64,000 nucleotides of DNA from Paraphysomonas bandaiensis (GCA_965644295.1 CBFFRP010000080.1:186001-250000), one strand, 5' to 3'; positions 8,291 to 61,216 are shown, numbered from the stretch's first letter. Translations and numbers: made by a program. The notes: a model not told the origin generated them from the letters alone.

Positions 8291-10285
8291 CTAAACACCA
8301 AATACTAGTACTACGTCAAACTGATTACGTGGCTCTATATTCAAACTTGTAGATTCTGAAAACGAATTGTGATGCCAATAAGATAAAGATGCAATGTCAT
8401 CAACGACAGACCCTGTCAAAGGCGATATCACCCGAGTAGTGGGCTGCCGAAACACAGTCAACATTAACGCTTTCTCATACTCAAGAACGACATCAGAAGG
8501 CGACGCACATGATGAAAATCGAAAGCACACCAGTCGCAAACTATCCTCCAATGACAAAACTCCGCTGACAATAGCAGCTGCATACTCTCCTAGACTGTGA
8601 CCCATCACTGCAGCTGGGCGAATACCCCGTGACAACCATACCTGACTCAGACAATACTCAAGAGCCACTAGTATAGGCTGAGAGTACGCAGTCTCCGAAA
8701 GGTACTCCGCTGCACTAACCTCAGTCAATCCGCCACAGATTCCAGGATACAATAACTCAGATGCACCTACACCCAAATGGGATCGGAGAATATCATCACA
8801 CCGACTCATAGCGTCACGAAATGTGGACTCCGATTCATACATATCGCGCAATACGCCAACACTGAGAGTCCCCTGTCCAGCAAATTGCCACACCATACCC
8901 GCTATACATGTCTCTGATGTCGTATCTGATGCGAATTGGCTGCTAGAAATAATACCAGGTGATCGGGAGTGAGAGACAGGAGCTTCCTCCAATATCACAT
9001 GAGATATTGTGCCGCTATAACCAAATGAACTCACTCCAGCTAACAAAGGACGATCCCCATGTCGAACCAATGGTGTAGGTTCCGTGGGAAACGAAATTGG
9101 ACTGCCTGATACAGATGCTGCCACCTTCGAGTTCAACTCACGCAGCTGGGCATTTGGAGGAGCTTGCTTATAATGAAGTGCCAATATCGCCGATAATATA
9201 CCTCCTATACCTGCTGCTGCCTCCATGTGACCGATATTCGCCTTCACACCAGAAACATACAATGTATTCTCTTCACTCCGCCCATGACCATATACCGACG
9301 ATAAAGCCTCCGTCTCAATAGGATCACCTAGTTTCGTCCCAGTCCCGTGAGCCTCAATAAGAGATACATCACCAGCATCCACACCAGCATCTGATAATGC
9401 CGCACGAAGAAGCTGCTCCTGGGCAAGACCATTGGGGGCTGTCAAACTAGCACTCTTACCGTCCTGCATCACTGCTGACCCTCGTACAACTGCATATATA
9501 CCATCATTATCTCGTTCTGCATCACTCAATCGTTTCAACACTAAGGCACCACATCCCTCAGCTCTGCAGTATCCGTTGGCGGATTCATCAAAGGTGTGAC
9601 ACTTTCCATCTGGTGATGTCATGCCGGCAACGGCACAGAGTACGGACGTTTTCAGTCCAATAGTATTAGATCCTGCAACCACCGCGGCGGTACAGTCCCC
9701 TCGGGCCAAACTGGCACAGGCATAATGCAAGGCAACAGAAACAGATGAACACGCCGTGTCAATCGTACAGCATGGCCCTTGTAACCCAAAACAATAGGAA
9801 ATTTTACCGGCACATGCAGATAATGAATTACTAGCGACATCGTACACTGATATGCTATCTGATACTTCAGAAAACCCAGAAATCACACTCGACTCCGTCG
9901 CTCCCATCATGCCAACAAAAACTCCTATATTTTCACCTTTCAGTTCTGAGATATCGTAGCCAGCATCTCGCAGTGCTTCGTGAGTACACTCCAAAAGCAA
10001 TCGTTGGCTCGGATCCATACAAGATGCCTCTGCATCAGAAATGCCAAACAGTGACGCATCGAAACTCTCCAGGACATCATCAGACAAGAAGCCACCATAT
10101 CGCGTACGCTCTAAAATGCTTGGGTCATTCCAGGAACTATGAGCCACCAATGAATCTACATCCCACCGATCCAGTGAAACAGTGCTTGTCATATCACGGC
10201 CCTCACATAACATACTCCACATTGATTCCAAATTATTAACATTACCAGGAAGACGGCAACTTACTCCAACGATGGCAACATTGCC
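8291..10285 (-). other. Module 5, first half: KS plus internally deleted AT
   Basis: KS intact. AT is identical to the others up to SLRLVC (about 8525), then jumps to a divergent YEK...SYW segment; IRGRLMQ...RAFH is missing. Confidence 0.85.
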
Positions 10286-13200
10286 ACTCCCATTGTATTT
10301 ATATGGCAGCACACTATCTGGCGATTCCGCAGTTGTAATCGATTCTGCCAGCCCGAGAAGATCGATTATATGCCCAGTTATTTCCCGAAGCGTTGGATAA
10401 TTAAATACCAATGTTGGTAAAACACGAACACCGAATTCAGATGCCAGTGTGCTGGCTAACTCTGTCATTGCTAAAGAGTCCAGTCCCATATCCATCACTT
10501 GGTCATCTTCTGATACGCCAGTCATTTCCAACAAAGATTCAACAACACTGCGAACAACTCGAACCACTTCTTCTTTCGACCAACCTTTGTTCACCTCCTT
10601 CGTTATAGTTTTGGAAATACTACTACGTAGAGAAACTACTCGACTATTAGAACGGCTGACGCTCTTAAACTGCGCTGATATACTTCGTGACATCCACGCA
10701 TCAGCTCCACGAGGGAGAACAGTAATCACACCATTTTTTTGACATGCACCTATCATCGTGTCTAATATCCTAGACGCAGATGATGAGTCTATGCTCATGC
10801 CTGCATCCATTCCTCCCACAGCTGCAGCCATGCCAATACCAGTAATTGCAGGCCATTGAATGCCGATACCACAAAGTCCCCTATCAACACGATACTCAAT
10901 AAGTTCATCAAGAAAGCTATTAGCTGCGCCATATGCTGATTGGCCAATATTACCGATGGCTGATGCAATAGATGAATACACAACAAAGAGCGAAAGCGAA
11001 TCATCCAACGTGTGCTTGTGTAACAACCACGCACTGTGAGCTTTAGATGCCCATACATCAGCACAACCAGATGCTGCACCACCCCCACGAATCAACGCAT
11101 CACGAAGCACTCCTGCTGCATGAATAATACCCCGAATACCCCCACCCATCTCACGGACCTCCCGTAACATATCCACAACAGATGACTCGTCAGATACGTC
11201 ACAACACATCACATGAACCTCACTGCCAGAGGACTTTTGAAGCCACTCCAATTCCGACTCAAGACCTTGGCCAGTGTATGACACCTTACCAGACCGAGAC
11301 AAAAGCACCAATCTTGACGCACCATGACCAGCTAGTATTCTTGCAGTCAAAAGCCCAAGTCCACCCAATCCACCGGTTATAATAAATGTCCCTCCTGCCA
11401 CATCGTCTACATCGTACATTTCTCTACGGCACAACTCCAGCGGCTCGTATCGCTTCACCGAGCGCACACCGTCCCGATACTTCACATCTATTTCACTTTG
11501 GAAATGCAAAAGTTCGGTCCGAACCGCTGAATGTGCACTACATATATCCGTATCAACAAGTTCGATATCCACTGTAGGGTACTCCAATTGAGCGCATCTC
11601 ATTGCTCCAGCTAAAGAACGAAGAGTAATATCCCTCTCATCAGATGAATCCACCGCTACTACCATTAATCGAGTTGCTAGGCCACAGCAAATATCAAGCA
11701 ACGACAATATGGTCGCTACTACTTCACCTCCATCAACGCACCCGTGATGTTTCGATACACTATTGAGACATAAAATCACCAAGTCATATTCTTTCAACTG
11801 TATAGACTGGTCTAGTGGCTTTTCGTTGTTATTTAAATCATACAGCTCGATGTGAGAGGGAAAATCGGGGAGAGCATCGTCACCAACTAAAGAATCATAT
11901 GACGTACTGTCGCCAACAACAAGACATGACGACATTGAGTTGGTACATCGCCCAGGATCAGTGCTACTTACTATCCAATGAGATGAAAGTTGGGAATAAG
12001 GCGTTGAGACATCGACATCAGTATTGTGCACACTGCGGGAATATAGTCCTTCCAAATAAAGAACTGCATGGCCTGAGGCAGAGAAAAGTGTAATATTAAA
12101 CACCGACATGTCTGCCGTGCATTCTCGCACTTCCACAACGACTTCACACCAATCTGATAACCAAATATGCAACAATTTATCATGCCTAAACCAAATGTGA
12201 TCTATAGCGTACGGGATTTGAGCACCATGAATATTGTTACAAAATGCATACGCCGCTGATGTTTGTAAAGCAGCGTCCAAAAGTGGAGGAGGAAGTACGT
12301 AATTCTTACTCATACCGATATCTCCAGTCGATATGCGCGACAAGACATATTTCATAGATGAATCACATCGAACTGCAGTCGCTAATCGAAACTTCGGGCC
12401 ATAAAATAAGCCATTGTCCGAAAACCGGGAATACAATGCTCCGACGTCAACTTCATCAGTACACAAAGAACGTATCGTTTCCAGACGTTTCTCCATCATA
12501 TGCCAATCAGGAGACAACTCGTCATTTACAAGTGACACTGAACAACGGGCATTCGACACCCTTGAATCACTTTGGTTACTGAACCATTCTAACTGGTTTC
12601 CGTCCGATACACACCACATACGTGTAGCAGCACTGTTTAAATCACTTCTCGTTACATTAGTTACCACTATTGGTCGGGTAATGGTAAGTGCTTCTAAATG
12701 GAGTGCAGATGTTAAATGAAGAGTACTGGTCTCCCTGATAACTGCAGCAATAGCCATGTCTATCATTCCAGCGCCTGGAAAAACTATGTCATTATGTAGG
12801 ACATGATCACGAAGCCATTCCTCTAATATTCCCACATGAAGATAGGAGTTGAAAGTAATGGTATTGGTCATTTCATTCAGTGACTGAAACTGAAAGAGAC
12901 GGTGAAAACTCTTGCGCATTTTGTAAAGTTTAATATTCGTCTGTCTAGTCGATATAACAGATGAAACTGCTTGTTTCAGAGTTGAATATCTCTCTACTTC
13001 AGTGCCAGAAAAAAAACTTAAAGTAGATGATTCGATTGTCGTCGTAGCAGCAATACGCTCACCGAGCCGCGATAAAGTTTTGTCTGCTCCCATCTCAACA
13101 AACACACAGTCACCATCACGACTCTCTCCAGTAAAACATACCTCCACTGCTGACTCATACAACACTGGCTGCAATATATGCTTCAACCAATATGACGATG

Positions 13201-60300: not shown

Positions 60301-61216
60301 CCGTGCACCATTCGTGCTCCCAAAGATTAGCAAATCCCTTAGAGTAGATCACAATATCATCAATTGTAGCTGGTATATATGCTTTATAATCGGAGTTGTT
60401 GTTCCCTGCGCAACATACTGAGTGCAGCAATGCATCAATTACGGGAGGCGGAATAATATAAGTAGAACGTAACAGCATCGTGCTTGCCAAAGAAATTTTC
60501 GATAAAATTTGTTTCGAATTCCTTCTGTACAACAAAGACTGGATGAGGCGAAAGGAATCGCCGTAATGCAGTCCCATTTTGTCCAAGCTATTATACATCT
60601 CGGAAATATTTACGGGACAAACACACTCTTCATCCCCAGTGGATGTAGTTTCCAGGATACGCTGTCGCATCATATCAGCACTAACGTAGCGATGATCATA
60701 CTCGCGAGAACACTCTATAAAAAGTATATTGGATTCATCGATGTCCGCGCCAAAAATTTCCACTCGGCCACTGCGAGATGAAATACACCAGAGGTGTGTG
60801 TTGGTATCTACCTTGCAGAGTTTGATGTGCTTGAAGTTTCGCAAACACAACAGTTCGGTTGATGCGGAATTCCCTAAGGACTTCATGCACCCCGAAACAG
60901 CAATGCTAATTCCTGCGGAAGGTGGAAAATAGTTTGAATTATTGATCGTGTAGTCCCCAAGCCAGTCGTTTTTGATGGAATCATGCAGAACAATCGAATG
61001 GATACTAGCTTCGTAAAATGGTACAAATGTACTTCTTTGTATCAACCGATCAATCTGGGTATTTGGCTTATAAGATTTGTAAAATTTTGCATCCGAAAGT
61101 GTGTCGCAGTCAAGAAGCTTGCATAGGTGAATATCTTTAGCAGATATAGTGGTCACTGTGTCTTCCGCTGCTGCGCCCAACACACCTTTCCCTTTAGGAA
61201 ACAAATATCCATCCAT
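38223..61216 (-). CDS. Giant modular type I PKS 'PKS-B' (about 7581 aa). Exons 61216-39249, 39202-39093, 39040-38973, 38922-38476, 38425-38380, 38329-38223
   Basis: Four KS, four AT, four KR, five ACP and five DH-like domains in a 22-kb exon. Five GT-AG introns of 46-52 nt restore an in-frame thioesterase; total spliced length 22746 nt is divisible by 3. Confidence 0.93.
39395..43035 (-). other. Module 9: KS-AT-DH0-ACP (no KR)
   Basis: Repeat identity ends at LVFSA (about 39742); a short unique linker then leads to ACP GLDSLGVTELA with no TGGLGGLG. Confidence 0.88.
39742..59515 (-). repeat. Near-identical intragenic tandem repeat, period 5124 bp (about 3.9 units; modules 6-9)
   Basis: Matching shadow ORFs at 39777/44901/50025/55149 and 42355/47479/52603/57727, all spaced 5124 bp. 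Units differ by scattered SNPs and one swapped KR C-terminal block. Confidence 0.95.
58475..61216 (-). other. Module 5, second half: DH0-KR-ACP at the N-terminus of PKS-B (no KS or AT)
   Basis: WLGDYTINNSNYFPP (His to Tyr at 60950-60952), VIDALLH, KR TGGLGGLG...QTAYSMSN, ACP GLDSL. Confidence 0.85.

Follow-up and report, generated by a model that had tools for sequence, protein, structure and literature searches.

The 64,000-nucleotide stretch of DNA analysed here, hereafter the window, comes from the 62.6-Mb, 669-contig genome of Paraphysomonas bandaiensis (C80:186001-250000, C80 being the contig) and carries two giant genes, PKS-A and PKS-B, for modular polyketide synthases (PKSs). An open reading frame (ORF) scan of the window placed PKS-A in one intronless frame of 7,290 amino acids (aa) at 8291..30163 on the minus strand and PKS-B in a frame of 7,328 aa before splicing at 39230..61216 on the same strand; both ORFs have a coding-strand base skew that is missing from the flanks. 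Splicing of PKS-B brings the combined length to 14,871 aa, or ~45 kb of coding sequence, and the polyA site of PKS-B (~38170) lies 8.0 kb from the PKS-A ATG (30163). Domain maps were made by Pfam tiling and by BLAST of domain seeds against both proteins, and cover a GNAT-type loading domain, ketosynthases (KS), acyltransferases (AT), dehydratases (DH), ketoreductases (KR), acyl carrier proteins (ACP) and a thioesterase (TE). The features are as follows.

8291..30163, minus strand: PKS-A, in the order GNAT-ACP0 / KS-AT-X-KR-ACP / KS-AT-DH-KR-ACP / KS-DH-KR-ACP / KS-AT-DH-KR-ACP / KS-AT(degenerate), then stop
29603..30163, minus strand: predicted GNAT-type loading (decarboxylase) domain, aa 1-187, from matches to PDB sequences
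29270..29566, minus strand: loading ACP (ACP0), with an 'IDSL' serine motif, PF00550
24428..29269, minus strand: A module 1, KS-AT-X-KR-ACP, predicted to leave a beta-hydroxyl
19394..24373, minus strand: A module 2, KS-AT-DH-KR-ACP, DH His and Asp motifs intact, predicted to leave an enoyl
15392..19339, minus strand: A module 3, KS-DH-KR-ACP, without AT
10340..15328, minus strand: A module 4, KS-AT-DH-KR-ACP
8294..10276, minus strand: first half of split module 5, KS5 (triad intact) and degenerate AT, up to the protein end
8294..8911, minus strand: degenerate AT, end of PKS-A
38223..61216, minus strand: PKS-B, 7,581 aa spliced, from RNA contigs of four runs
61216-39249, 39202-39093, 39040-38973, 38922-38476, 38425-38380 and 38329-38223, minus strand: PKS-B exons (stop included)
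39203-39248, 39041-39092, 38923-38972, 38426-38475 and 38330-38379, minus strand: PKS-B introns, from RNA joints
58472..61216, minus strand: second half of split module 5, a linker-like N-terminus (~75 aa), DH (His to Tyr), KR and ACP
43100..58399, minus strand: B modules 6-8, three KS-AT-DH-KR-ACP units
39401..43027, minus strand: B module 9, KS-AT-DH(Tyr type)-ACP, without KR
38223..39202, minus strand: thioesterase, five small exons, GYSLG and GDHF motifs

The 3' end of PKS-B was defined by RNA contigs of four runs, two ocean metatranscriptomes (X12, polyA, and X17) and two cultures (X8 and X9), aligned to 36500-42400 (5,901 letters). All five splice joints are identical in 4/4 runs, and each of the five introns is 46-52 nt long and runs GT..AG on the minus strand when ambiguity in the position of the cut is allowed for. 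Because the first intron (46 nt, 39203-39248) opens ahead of the ORF stop at 39230, the final 19 nt of this ORF, up to its stop codon, belong to the intron. After splicing, an open frame of 7,581 aa extends to a stop at 38225-38223. A T run before 38170 in run X9 is the minus-strand polyA tail of PKS-B, and contig depth is zero across 37091-38075. The spliced protein carries GYSLG at aa 7400 (nucleophile) and GDHF at aa 7547 (His) and, searched exon by exon, gives weak Pfam matches (PF00975, E 0.002; PF00561, E 0.012); by its motifs we assign the C-terminal domain as a PKS thioesterase, an alpha/beta hydrolase of the PF00975 type. PKS-A has no TE.

The two proteins together have, in module order, 9 KS (five in PKS-A and four in PKS-B), 8 intact ATs, 8 KRs and 10 ACPs, and eight DH-like domains detected by Pfam in addition to a degenerate one in module 1. 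The Cys-His-His triad is kept in 9/9 KS (DTACSS, EAHGTGT and KANIGH motifs). Eight ATs carry GHSLG, the Arg in 'IRGRL' and 'RAFHS', which by established motif rules marks them as malonyl type, and the KRs carry GGLGGLG together with 'LRD' at the LDD position, the signature of B-type KRs under the Caffrey/Keatinge-Clay rule. Repeated KS-AT-(processing)-ACP modules thus stand on one polypeptide, as in type I modular PKSs. An AT is not present in every module: no AT match was found in module 3 between the KS (3609-3994) and the DH (from 4085), and the module 5 AT is truncated and has lost its His motif, making this a cis-AT/AT-less hybrid line.

PKS-A opens with its loading domain. Residues 6-187 match the GNAT domains of 7UCI, which we take to be SxtA (8.6e-30), GphF (6MFC, 1.4e-22) and CurA (2REE, 3.4e-21), and in the alignment to 7UCI the domain retains both the conserved Thr, within 'MTRC', and the conserved His, within 'FHVSGGA'; presumably these are the equivalents of CurA Thr355 and His389, with the catalytic roles described in the CurA literature. 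The 7UCI entry was deposited as 'polyketide synthase-related protein'. Behind the GNAT domain, ACP0 (aa 244-280) gives a weak but significant match to PF00550 (E 2.1e-4). Because of the GNAT matches, the retained Thr and His and the ACP that follows, we assign the loading module to the CurA/GphF type, predicted to act by malonyl decarboxylation. Neither the GNAT domain nor the X region of module 1 (~500 aa, a degenerate DH plus the structural part of a KR) is matched by any Pfam family. The three DHs of PKS-A carry 'DHVLHNDIVFP' and 'LLDAALQ' and are of the active type.

PKS-B, in contrast to PKS-A, begins inside a module and has the architecture DH-KR-ACP / 3x KS-AT-DH-KR-ACP / KS-AT-DH-ACP / TE, and modules 6-8 repeat with a period of 5,124 nt, exactly 1,708 aa. 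In its four repeated DHs ('DYSIRDIIVLP', 'LIEISIL') the catalytic His is replaced by Tyr and the Asp by Glu, and its first DH ('LGDYTINN...') likewise has Tyr at the catalytic His position. In other species, the five DH-bearing matches compared and a further relative, L008, all have the His type. A search with all domain seeds by tblastn found no PKS domains downstream of PKS-A (1-8290), between the two genes (30164-38155) or within 14 kb upstream of PKS-B, and so no KS or loader ahead of that gene.

The ends of the two proteins complement each other. The last AT of PKS-A is 97.7% identical to the other ATs over its first ~131 aa, up to 'LRLVC'; beyond this point ~80 aa (the small subdomain) are missing, the AFHS His motif is lost, the remaining piece is 30-40% identical, and the protein stops at the equivalent of '..VEMGAD' in intact ATs. 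PKS-B leads into its first DH motif with 88 residues, compared with a post-AT linker of 80-85 residues in intact modules. An orphan KS-AT without an ACP at the end of PKS-A is therefore complemented by an orphan linker-DH-KR-ACP without a KS at the start of PKS-B, and both proteins break at the same point within one module. Taken together, these data bear out most of what an earlier, sequence-only reading of the window had proposed, namely two giant same-strand PKSs 8 kb apart with nine modules, a GNAT starter on PKS-A only and a release domain on PKS-B only, each protein supplying what the other lacks, and a gene order on the transcribed strand (B then A) that is the reverse of catalytic order. 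Its placement in intron-containing eukaryotic DNA was also right, as was its naming of the neighbours QCR9 (PF05365, E 2.3e-7) and UTP13 (WD40 plus PF08625, E 1.2e-18).

A genome-wide scan with the PF00109 profile recovered the nine KS of PKS-A and PKS-B plus another eight, all within a single frame of 12,609 codons (C80:261337-299163, plus strand), which we call gene C; with its TE exons, the gene was compared with A and B as C80:261361-300151.

C80:261337-300151, plus strand: gene C, the 12,609-codon frame and TE exons at 299222-300151; 8 modules

Gene C starts 11 kb past the end of the window, out of view of the sequence-only reading, and lies head-to-head with PKS-B, 14 kb away. It opens with GNAT-ACP / KS-AT-X-KR-ACP / 2x KS-AT-DH(His)-KR-ACP / KS-DH-KR-ACP and continues, in modules 5-8, with KS-AT-DH(Tyr)-KR-ACP / KS-AT-DH(Tyr)-ACP / KS-DH(Tyr)-KR-ACP / KS-AT-DH(His)-KR-ACP; its TE is encoded in small exons laid out like those of PKS-B and is 33-45% identical to that TE. 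Gene C thus belongs to the same family as PKS-A and PKS-B, with which it shares the GNAT-ACP-KS-AT-X-KR-ACP start, a homogenised KS-AT cassette, the mix of His- and Tyr-type DHs, AT-less modules, one KR-less module and the small-exon TE, while differing in being a single polypeptide of eight modules. Its unique parts are those of an old paralogue (TE 33-45%, DHs 25-45% and GNAT 76% identical); the KS1 N-terminal halves of A and C are 100% identical and the two loading ACPs 98%. The front half of gene C resembles PKS-A (A2-A5 are 61-68% identical to C2-C4) and its back half PKS-B (the KS N-terminal halves of B1-B4 are 70-73% identical to those of C5-C8), with His-type DHs first and Tyr-type DHs later, as in A followed by B. 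This resemblance provides Rosetta-stone-type support for the order A then B. That Tyr-for-His DH-like domains are kept in both B and C raises the side possibility that they have a function of their own. The 22-kb and 38-kb PKS bodies are intronless and the five introns of PKS-B (46-52 nt) all fall in its last 1 kb, the TE; because introns are confined to this part, its history may differ from that of the module array.

Gene C, being equipped with a GNAT-ACP loader and a TE, offers neither PKS-A nor PKS-B a better partner, and no other orphan PKS was found in the 62.6-Mb genome; the remaining hits of the scan were unrelated loci on C288 (twice), C619 and C65 and two small repeat contigs. The C288 locus (C288:469225-480183) holds two inverted copies of a KS/AT-containing gene, with ORFs of 2,073 and 1,868 aa ~7 kb apart, and is putatively an unrelated PKS/FAS-like or PUFA-synthase-like locus. 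C544:1-4248 is a single open frame in which KS5 of PKS-A and the first ~125 AT residues are joined to an A-type DH-KR-ACP-KS; the junction ('..SLEDSLR|HVGILEEW..') lies 3 residues from the AT break of PKS-A itself, and the contig may represent another allele, a product of recombination or a chimera of the assembly. C595:1-5052 is a one-module contig that wraps on itself and is 99.9% identical to gene C modules 5/6. It is probably a collapsed-repeat by-product, for which reason the module count of gene C may be uncertain.

The near-identical KS-AT and KR blocks noted from the sequence alone are real at the protein level, where ATs are 98-100% identical within PKS-A and 91-93% between A and B and KRs 98-100% and 75-84%, respectively, and at the DNA level. 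We aligned the DNA of the 17 KS-AT regions from A, B and C and compared them with A2 as reference in 90-nt windows. Over the first ~800 nt of each KS identity is mostly <75%, whereas from mid-KS through the linker and AT (~1.6 kb) most 90-nt windows are 95-99% identical to A2; in B and C, a few windows of this block drop to 85-95% or lower. Between genes, dS of the ATs is 0.12-0.18, in contrast to a pS of 0.76-0.81 (saturated) for DHs and KS N-terminal halves of A and B against C. Because only gene conversion of a defined cassette explains low AT dS next to saturated DH and KS N-terminal pS, the alignments identify a 1.6-kb cassette, consisting of the 3' half of the KS, the linker and the AT, as homogenised by gene conversion. 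The non-homogenised parts have dN/dS of 0.22-0.47, a pattern indicating purifying selection.

Relatives of the GNAT-ACP-KS-AT start (700-aa query) were found at 52-57% identity in metagenome and eukaryote collections. One, which shares the GNAT-KS-AT-X-KR start (ACP0 falling below the listing threshold), lies on a 122-kb contig with eukaryote-type neighbours (protein kinase, MIP and peptidase S10) and is followed by a 15,034-aa gene call; a second, with this start too, was found on a 6.9-kb contig. Among eukaryotes, a protein of Ochromonadaceae sp. CCMP2298, at 50% identity, is the only relative with a name. A query with the first 300 residues of PKS-A returned no relatives of 4,000-12,750 aa, which reflects the length filter and fragmentary gene calls rather than absence. 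In a quick maximum-likelihood KS tree (SH-aLRT support only, careful search unfinished, homogenised halves included) the 17 KS and the relatives form one clade (support 100) apart from 12 sampled bacterial KS; within it, KS1 of A and C, which follows the loader, clusters with the KS that follow the loader in the relatives.

Evidence for transcription of all three genes comes from the polyA ocean metatranscriptome X12. There, an RNA contig on the homogenised block of PKS-B continues into 9631-9660, KS5-specific sequence of PKS-A (1 mismatch); a contig departs from PKS-B at 41268 ('LRLVC') into a 30-letter consensus, taken from a loose end reported as 255 letters, that equals 8496-8525 in the unique tail of PKS-A exactly; and a contig continues into the AT-DH boundary of gene C. 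Because X12 contigs run into A-specific sequence, PKS-A is transcribed in the same sample as PKS-B, and because a contig crosses 'LRLVC' to 8496-8525, the degenerate-AT junction of PKS-A is seen in independent environmental RNA. Transcripts of the unique 3' ends of A and B and a contig of C thus co-occur in X12, and PKS-B is also expressed in the two culture runs (X8 and X9).

We consider it likely that, in this marine protist, PKS-A and PKS-B are the subunits of a single type I modular PKS of the cis-AT class. In this model, the GNAT domain of PKS-A would decarboxylate malonyl-ACP0 to give an acetyl starter, and modules 1-4 would extend it with malonate, leaving one beta-hydroxyl and then three conjugated double bonds. 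Module 5 would be split between the proteins, KS5 and the dead AT closing PKS-A and the DH-like domain, KR and ACP opening PKS-B, with the first ~75 residues of PKS-B replacing the post-AT linker and probably docking onto KS5-AT. Modules 5-8, whose DH-like domains are devoid of the catalytic His, would stop at hydroxyls, module 9 would leave a 3-keto group because it has no KR, and the spliced TE would release the chain, either as the acid or as a pyrone-type lactone or macrolactone. An AT acting in trans would have to load the ACPs of module 3, which is AT-less, and of the split module. Besides the neighbouring in-cis ATs, the genome contains a FabD-like ORF (C218) and four PPTase-like matches. 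Under strict colinearity, the C19 hydroxyl would come from module 1, the 12,14,16-triene from modules 2-4 and the C11/C9/C7/C5 hydroxyls from modules 5-8, and the predicted product would be a 3-oxo-5,7,9,11,19-pentahydroxy-icosa-12,14,16-trienoyl chain, with a putative free acid of C20H32O8 (~400 Da).

In agreement with this model, the clustered, colinear two-gene line put forward by the sequence-only reading has held up in its testable parts: loader and TE are complementary, flanks and spacer contain no PKS domains, the only other large PKS, gene C, is self-contained and offers no rival partner, and transcripts of A and B are both present in X12, which is co-occurrence rather than quantitative co-regulation. 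We also predicted a complex of A residues 6600-7290 with B residues 1-80. The score was 0.37, compared with 0.00 for the best control, with a partner pLDDT of at least 34 and at least 66% of contacts shared among runs. The mark used for such predictions was reached by 51/78 solved complexes and 2/108 mismatched pairs; at scores of at most 0.60 it was reached by 5/78 solved complexes and likewise by all 4 passing mismatches (of 180). The prediction would therefore add a small increment, and weak support, to a coupling of A and B that is otherwise suggested by the fit of their ends.

Several points weigh against the model. Gene order is the reverse of catalytic order, neither protein has recognisable docking domains, and the complex prediction is weak with a poorly folded partner. 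A trans-acting AT has to be assumed, given the dead AT in the split module and the lack of any AT in module 3. Expression of PKS-A is known from loose ends of metatranscriptome contigs, and RNA support for the PKS-B gene model comes from its 3' end. How many near-identical modules are counted is a matter of the assembly, with C544 and C595 as signs of assembly trouble in these genes. Finally, the colinearity rules are bacterial, and eukaryotic PKSs may iterate or skip modules.

Some of these points would also be expected if PKS-A and PKS-B were separate leftovers of a rearranged C-like duplicate, with A making a short TE-less chain or nothing and B an unprimed or otherwise primed remnant. The broken last AT of PKS-A and the weak docking support fit this explanation, as does the reversed gene order, because of which simple gene fission cannot explain the pair, and gene conversion from paralogue C could keep frames open in the homogenised blocks. 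We nevertheless regard it as unlikely: both ~22-kb frames are open even in segments saturated against C (pS 0.76-0.81) and have dN/dS of 0.2-0.5, 9/9 KS triads are intact, the orphan KS-AT and orphan DH-KR-ACP fit at one module boundary, and both genes are transcribed, with the mRNA of PKS-B spliced and polyadenylated.

Slightly less probable still is that the two genes are real while their module count and order are products of assembly, the true genes having more or fewer than 5+4 modules. The repeat units of PKS-B are 95-99.6% identical in DNA over 5.1 kb, the 5,052-bp single module of C595 matches C modules 5/6 at 99.9%, and in C544 KS5-AT(1-125) runs on, in frame, into a DH-KR-ACP-KS of A type. 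Yet 22-387 mismatches distinguish the PKS-B units from one another, so that long reads can order them, and independent RNA contigs back both the 3' end of PKS-A ('LRLVC' into the unique tail) and the KR-less last module and TE of PKS-B. It is very improbable that A, B and C exchange intermediates in one larger three-gene pathway (A to C, or C priming B), as their location within 113 kb, their 95-99% identical KS-AT cassettes, the identical KS1 N-terminal halves and the RNA contigs of all three in run X12 would allow, because C has its own GNAT-ACP loader and TE exons and no orphan half-module, and unmatched ends occur only in A and B.

The two-subunit model has a published eukaryotic precedent, and in this respect the sequence-only reading over-rated the novelty of the locus. 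In the toxic haptophyte alga Prymnesium parvum, PKZILLA-1 has a loading module and no TE, PKZILLA-2 has a TE and no loader, module 34 (M34) is split across both proteins, and introns are GT-AG (bioRxiv 10.1101/2024.01.29.577497). PKS-A and PKS-B show the same logic: two giant genes, here probably for one line, a loader on the first protein only, a TE on the second only and a break inside one module. The two systems differ in that the PKZILLAs are trans-AT, start from an ANL ligase-ACP loader, comprise 56 modules, lie on different pseudo-chromosomes and make prymnesin, whereas the A/B line is mostly cis-AT and GNAT-primed, with 9 modules and genes 8 kb apart. The order GNAT fold, ACP and KS at the start of PKS-A is that of CurA (curacin), GphF (gephyronic acid) and 7UCI, with a match over ~185 residues that includes the conserved Thr and His; those proteins are bacterial, while the GNAT of PKS-A forms the very N-terminus of a eukaryotic protein. 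Bacterial GNAT loading modules often have an adaptor or methyltransferase domain in front. Very high identity between modules is found in the mycolactone PKS of Mycobacterium ulcerans and in other bacterial PKSs, where it is attributed to recombination or gene conversion. In contrast to such mycolactone-type concerted evolution, homogenisation here concerns a defined cassette in 17 modules of three eukaryotic genes, in which the KS 5' halves have diverged.

Modular type I PKSs are found in other microbial eukaryotes as well. Cryptosporidium CpPKS1, the Toxoplasma PKSs and Chlamydomonas PKS1 are single-gene giant cis-AT PKSs. A KS survey of MMETSP transcriptomes (Kohli et al. 2016, PMC5029157) reported expressed type I KS, as fragments only, from stramenopiles that included labyrinthulids, thraustochytrids and chrysophytes. 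Among these protist PKSs and KS surveys, we did not find a GNAT-primed, two-gene, split-module line described.

It is tempting, but only tentatively so, to combine two features of the locus into one reading, in which a module was cut between the AT and its post-AT linker, the module is re-formed non-covalently by docking of the post-AT linker of PKS-B onto the KS-AT of PKS-A, and the cassette is homogenised by conversion while the KS 5' halves and the processing domains can diverge freely. To our knowledge, docking of a post-AT linker onto KS-AT has not been described for cis-AT PKSs. If true, this reading would turn the locus into an experiment of nature on the evolution of modular PKSs and on the places at which they can be divided. 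The A/B line would be a complete, expressed and tractable eukaryotic assembly line with a predicted product mass that can be searched for, from an organism whose transcripts are present in ocean metatranscriptomes, and through it the PKZILLA principle of two genes sharing a split module would reach a second protist lineage and a small system of cis-AT type. Placed beside the single-gene paralogue C, it permits a direct comparison of split and fused PKSs, and the locus shows which stretches of KS-AT tolerate recombination, information of value for the engineering of PKSs.

No tailoring genes were found in the ~35 kb of flanks, whose contents are limited to QCR9 and UTP13, a leucine-rich repeat protein, a copia fragment and flavohaemoglobin-like pieces. 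The flavohaemoglobin-like gene lies 3 kb past gene C, with no evident link to the PKSs, as adjacent ORFs for a globin (PF00042, 1.1e-12) and a FAD-binding protein (PF00970, 1.2e-8) at C80:303051-304214 on the minus strand. The copia-type retrotransposon pol fragment, apparent by eye and without a Pfam match, is upstream of PKS-B at 63152-63991 on the minus strand. Between the two genes lies the following feature.

30164..38169, no strand: spacer without PKS domains, containing repeat/retroposon pieces and an unannotated 210-aa ORF

The 210-aa ORF (31763-32395, minus strand) has no Pfam match; its low-confidence look-alikes in the Atlas are hypothetical oomycete proteins and p53/NDT80/LAG1-like DNA-binding folds (0.75-0.79), and a role as cluster regulator is only a lead. 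Towards the PKS-B end of the spacer, 36500-37090 reaches a contig depth of up to ~2,000 in the culture RNA runs, with contigs that continue into unrelated sequence, and is an expressed multi-copy repeat; short pieces of ORF similar to it recur at 659-910, 34398-34568 and 35285-35437.

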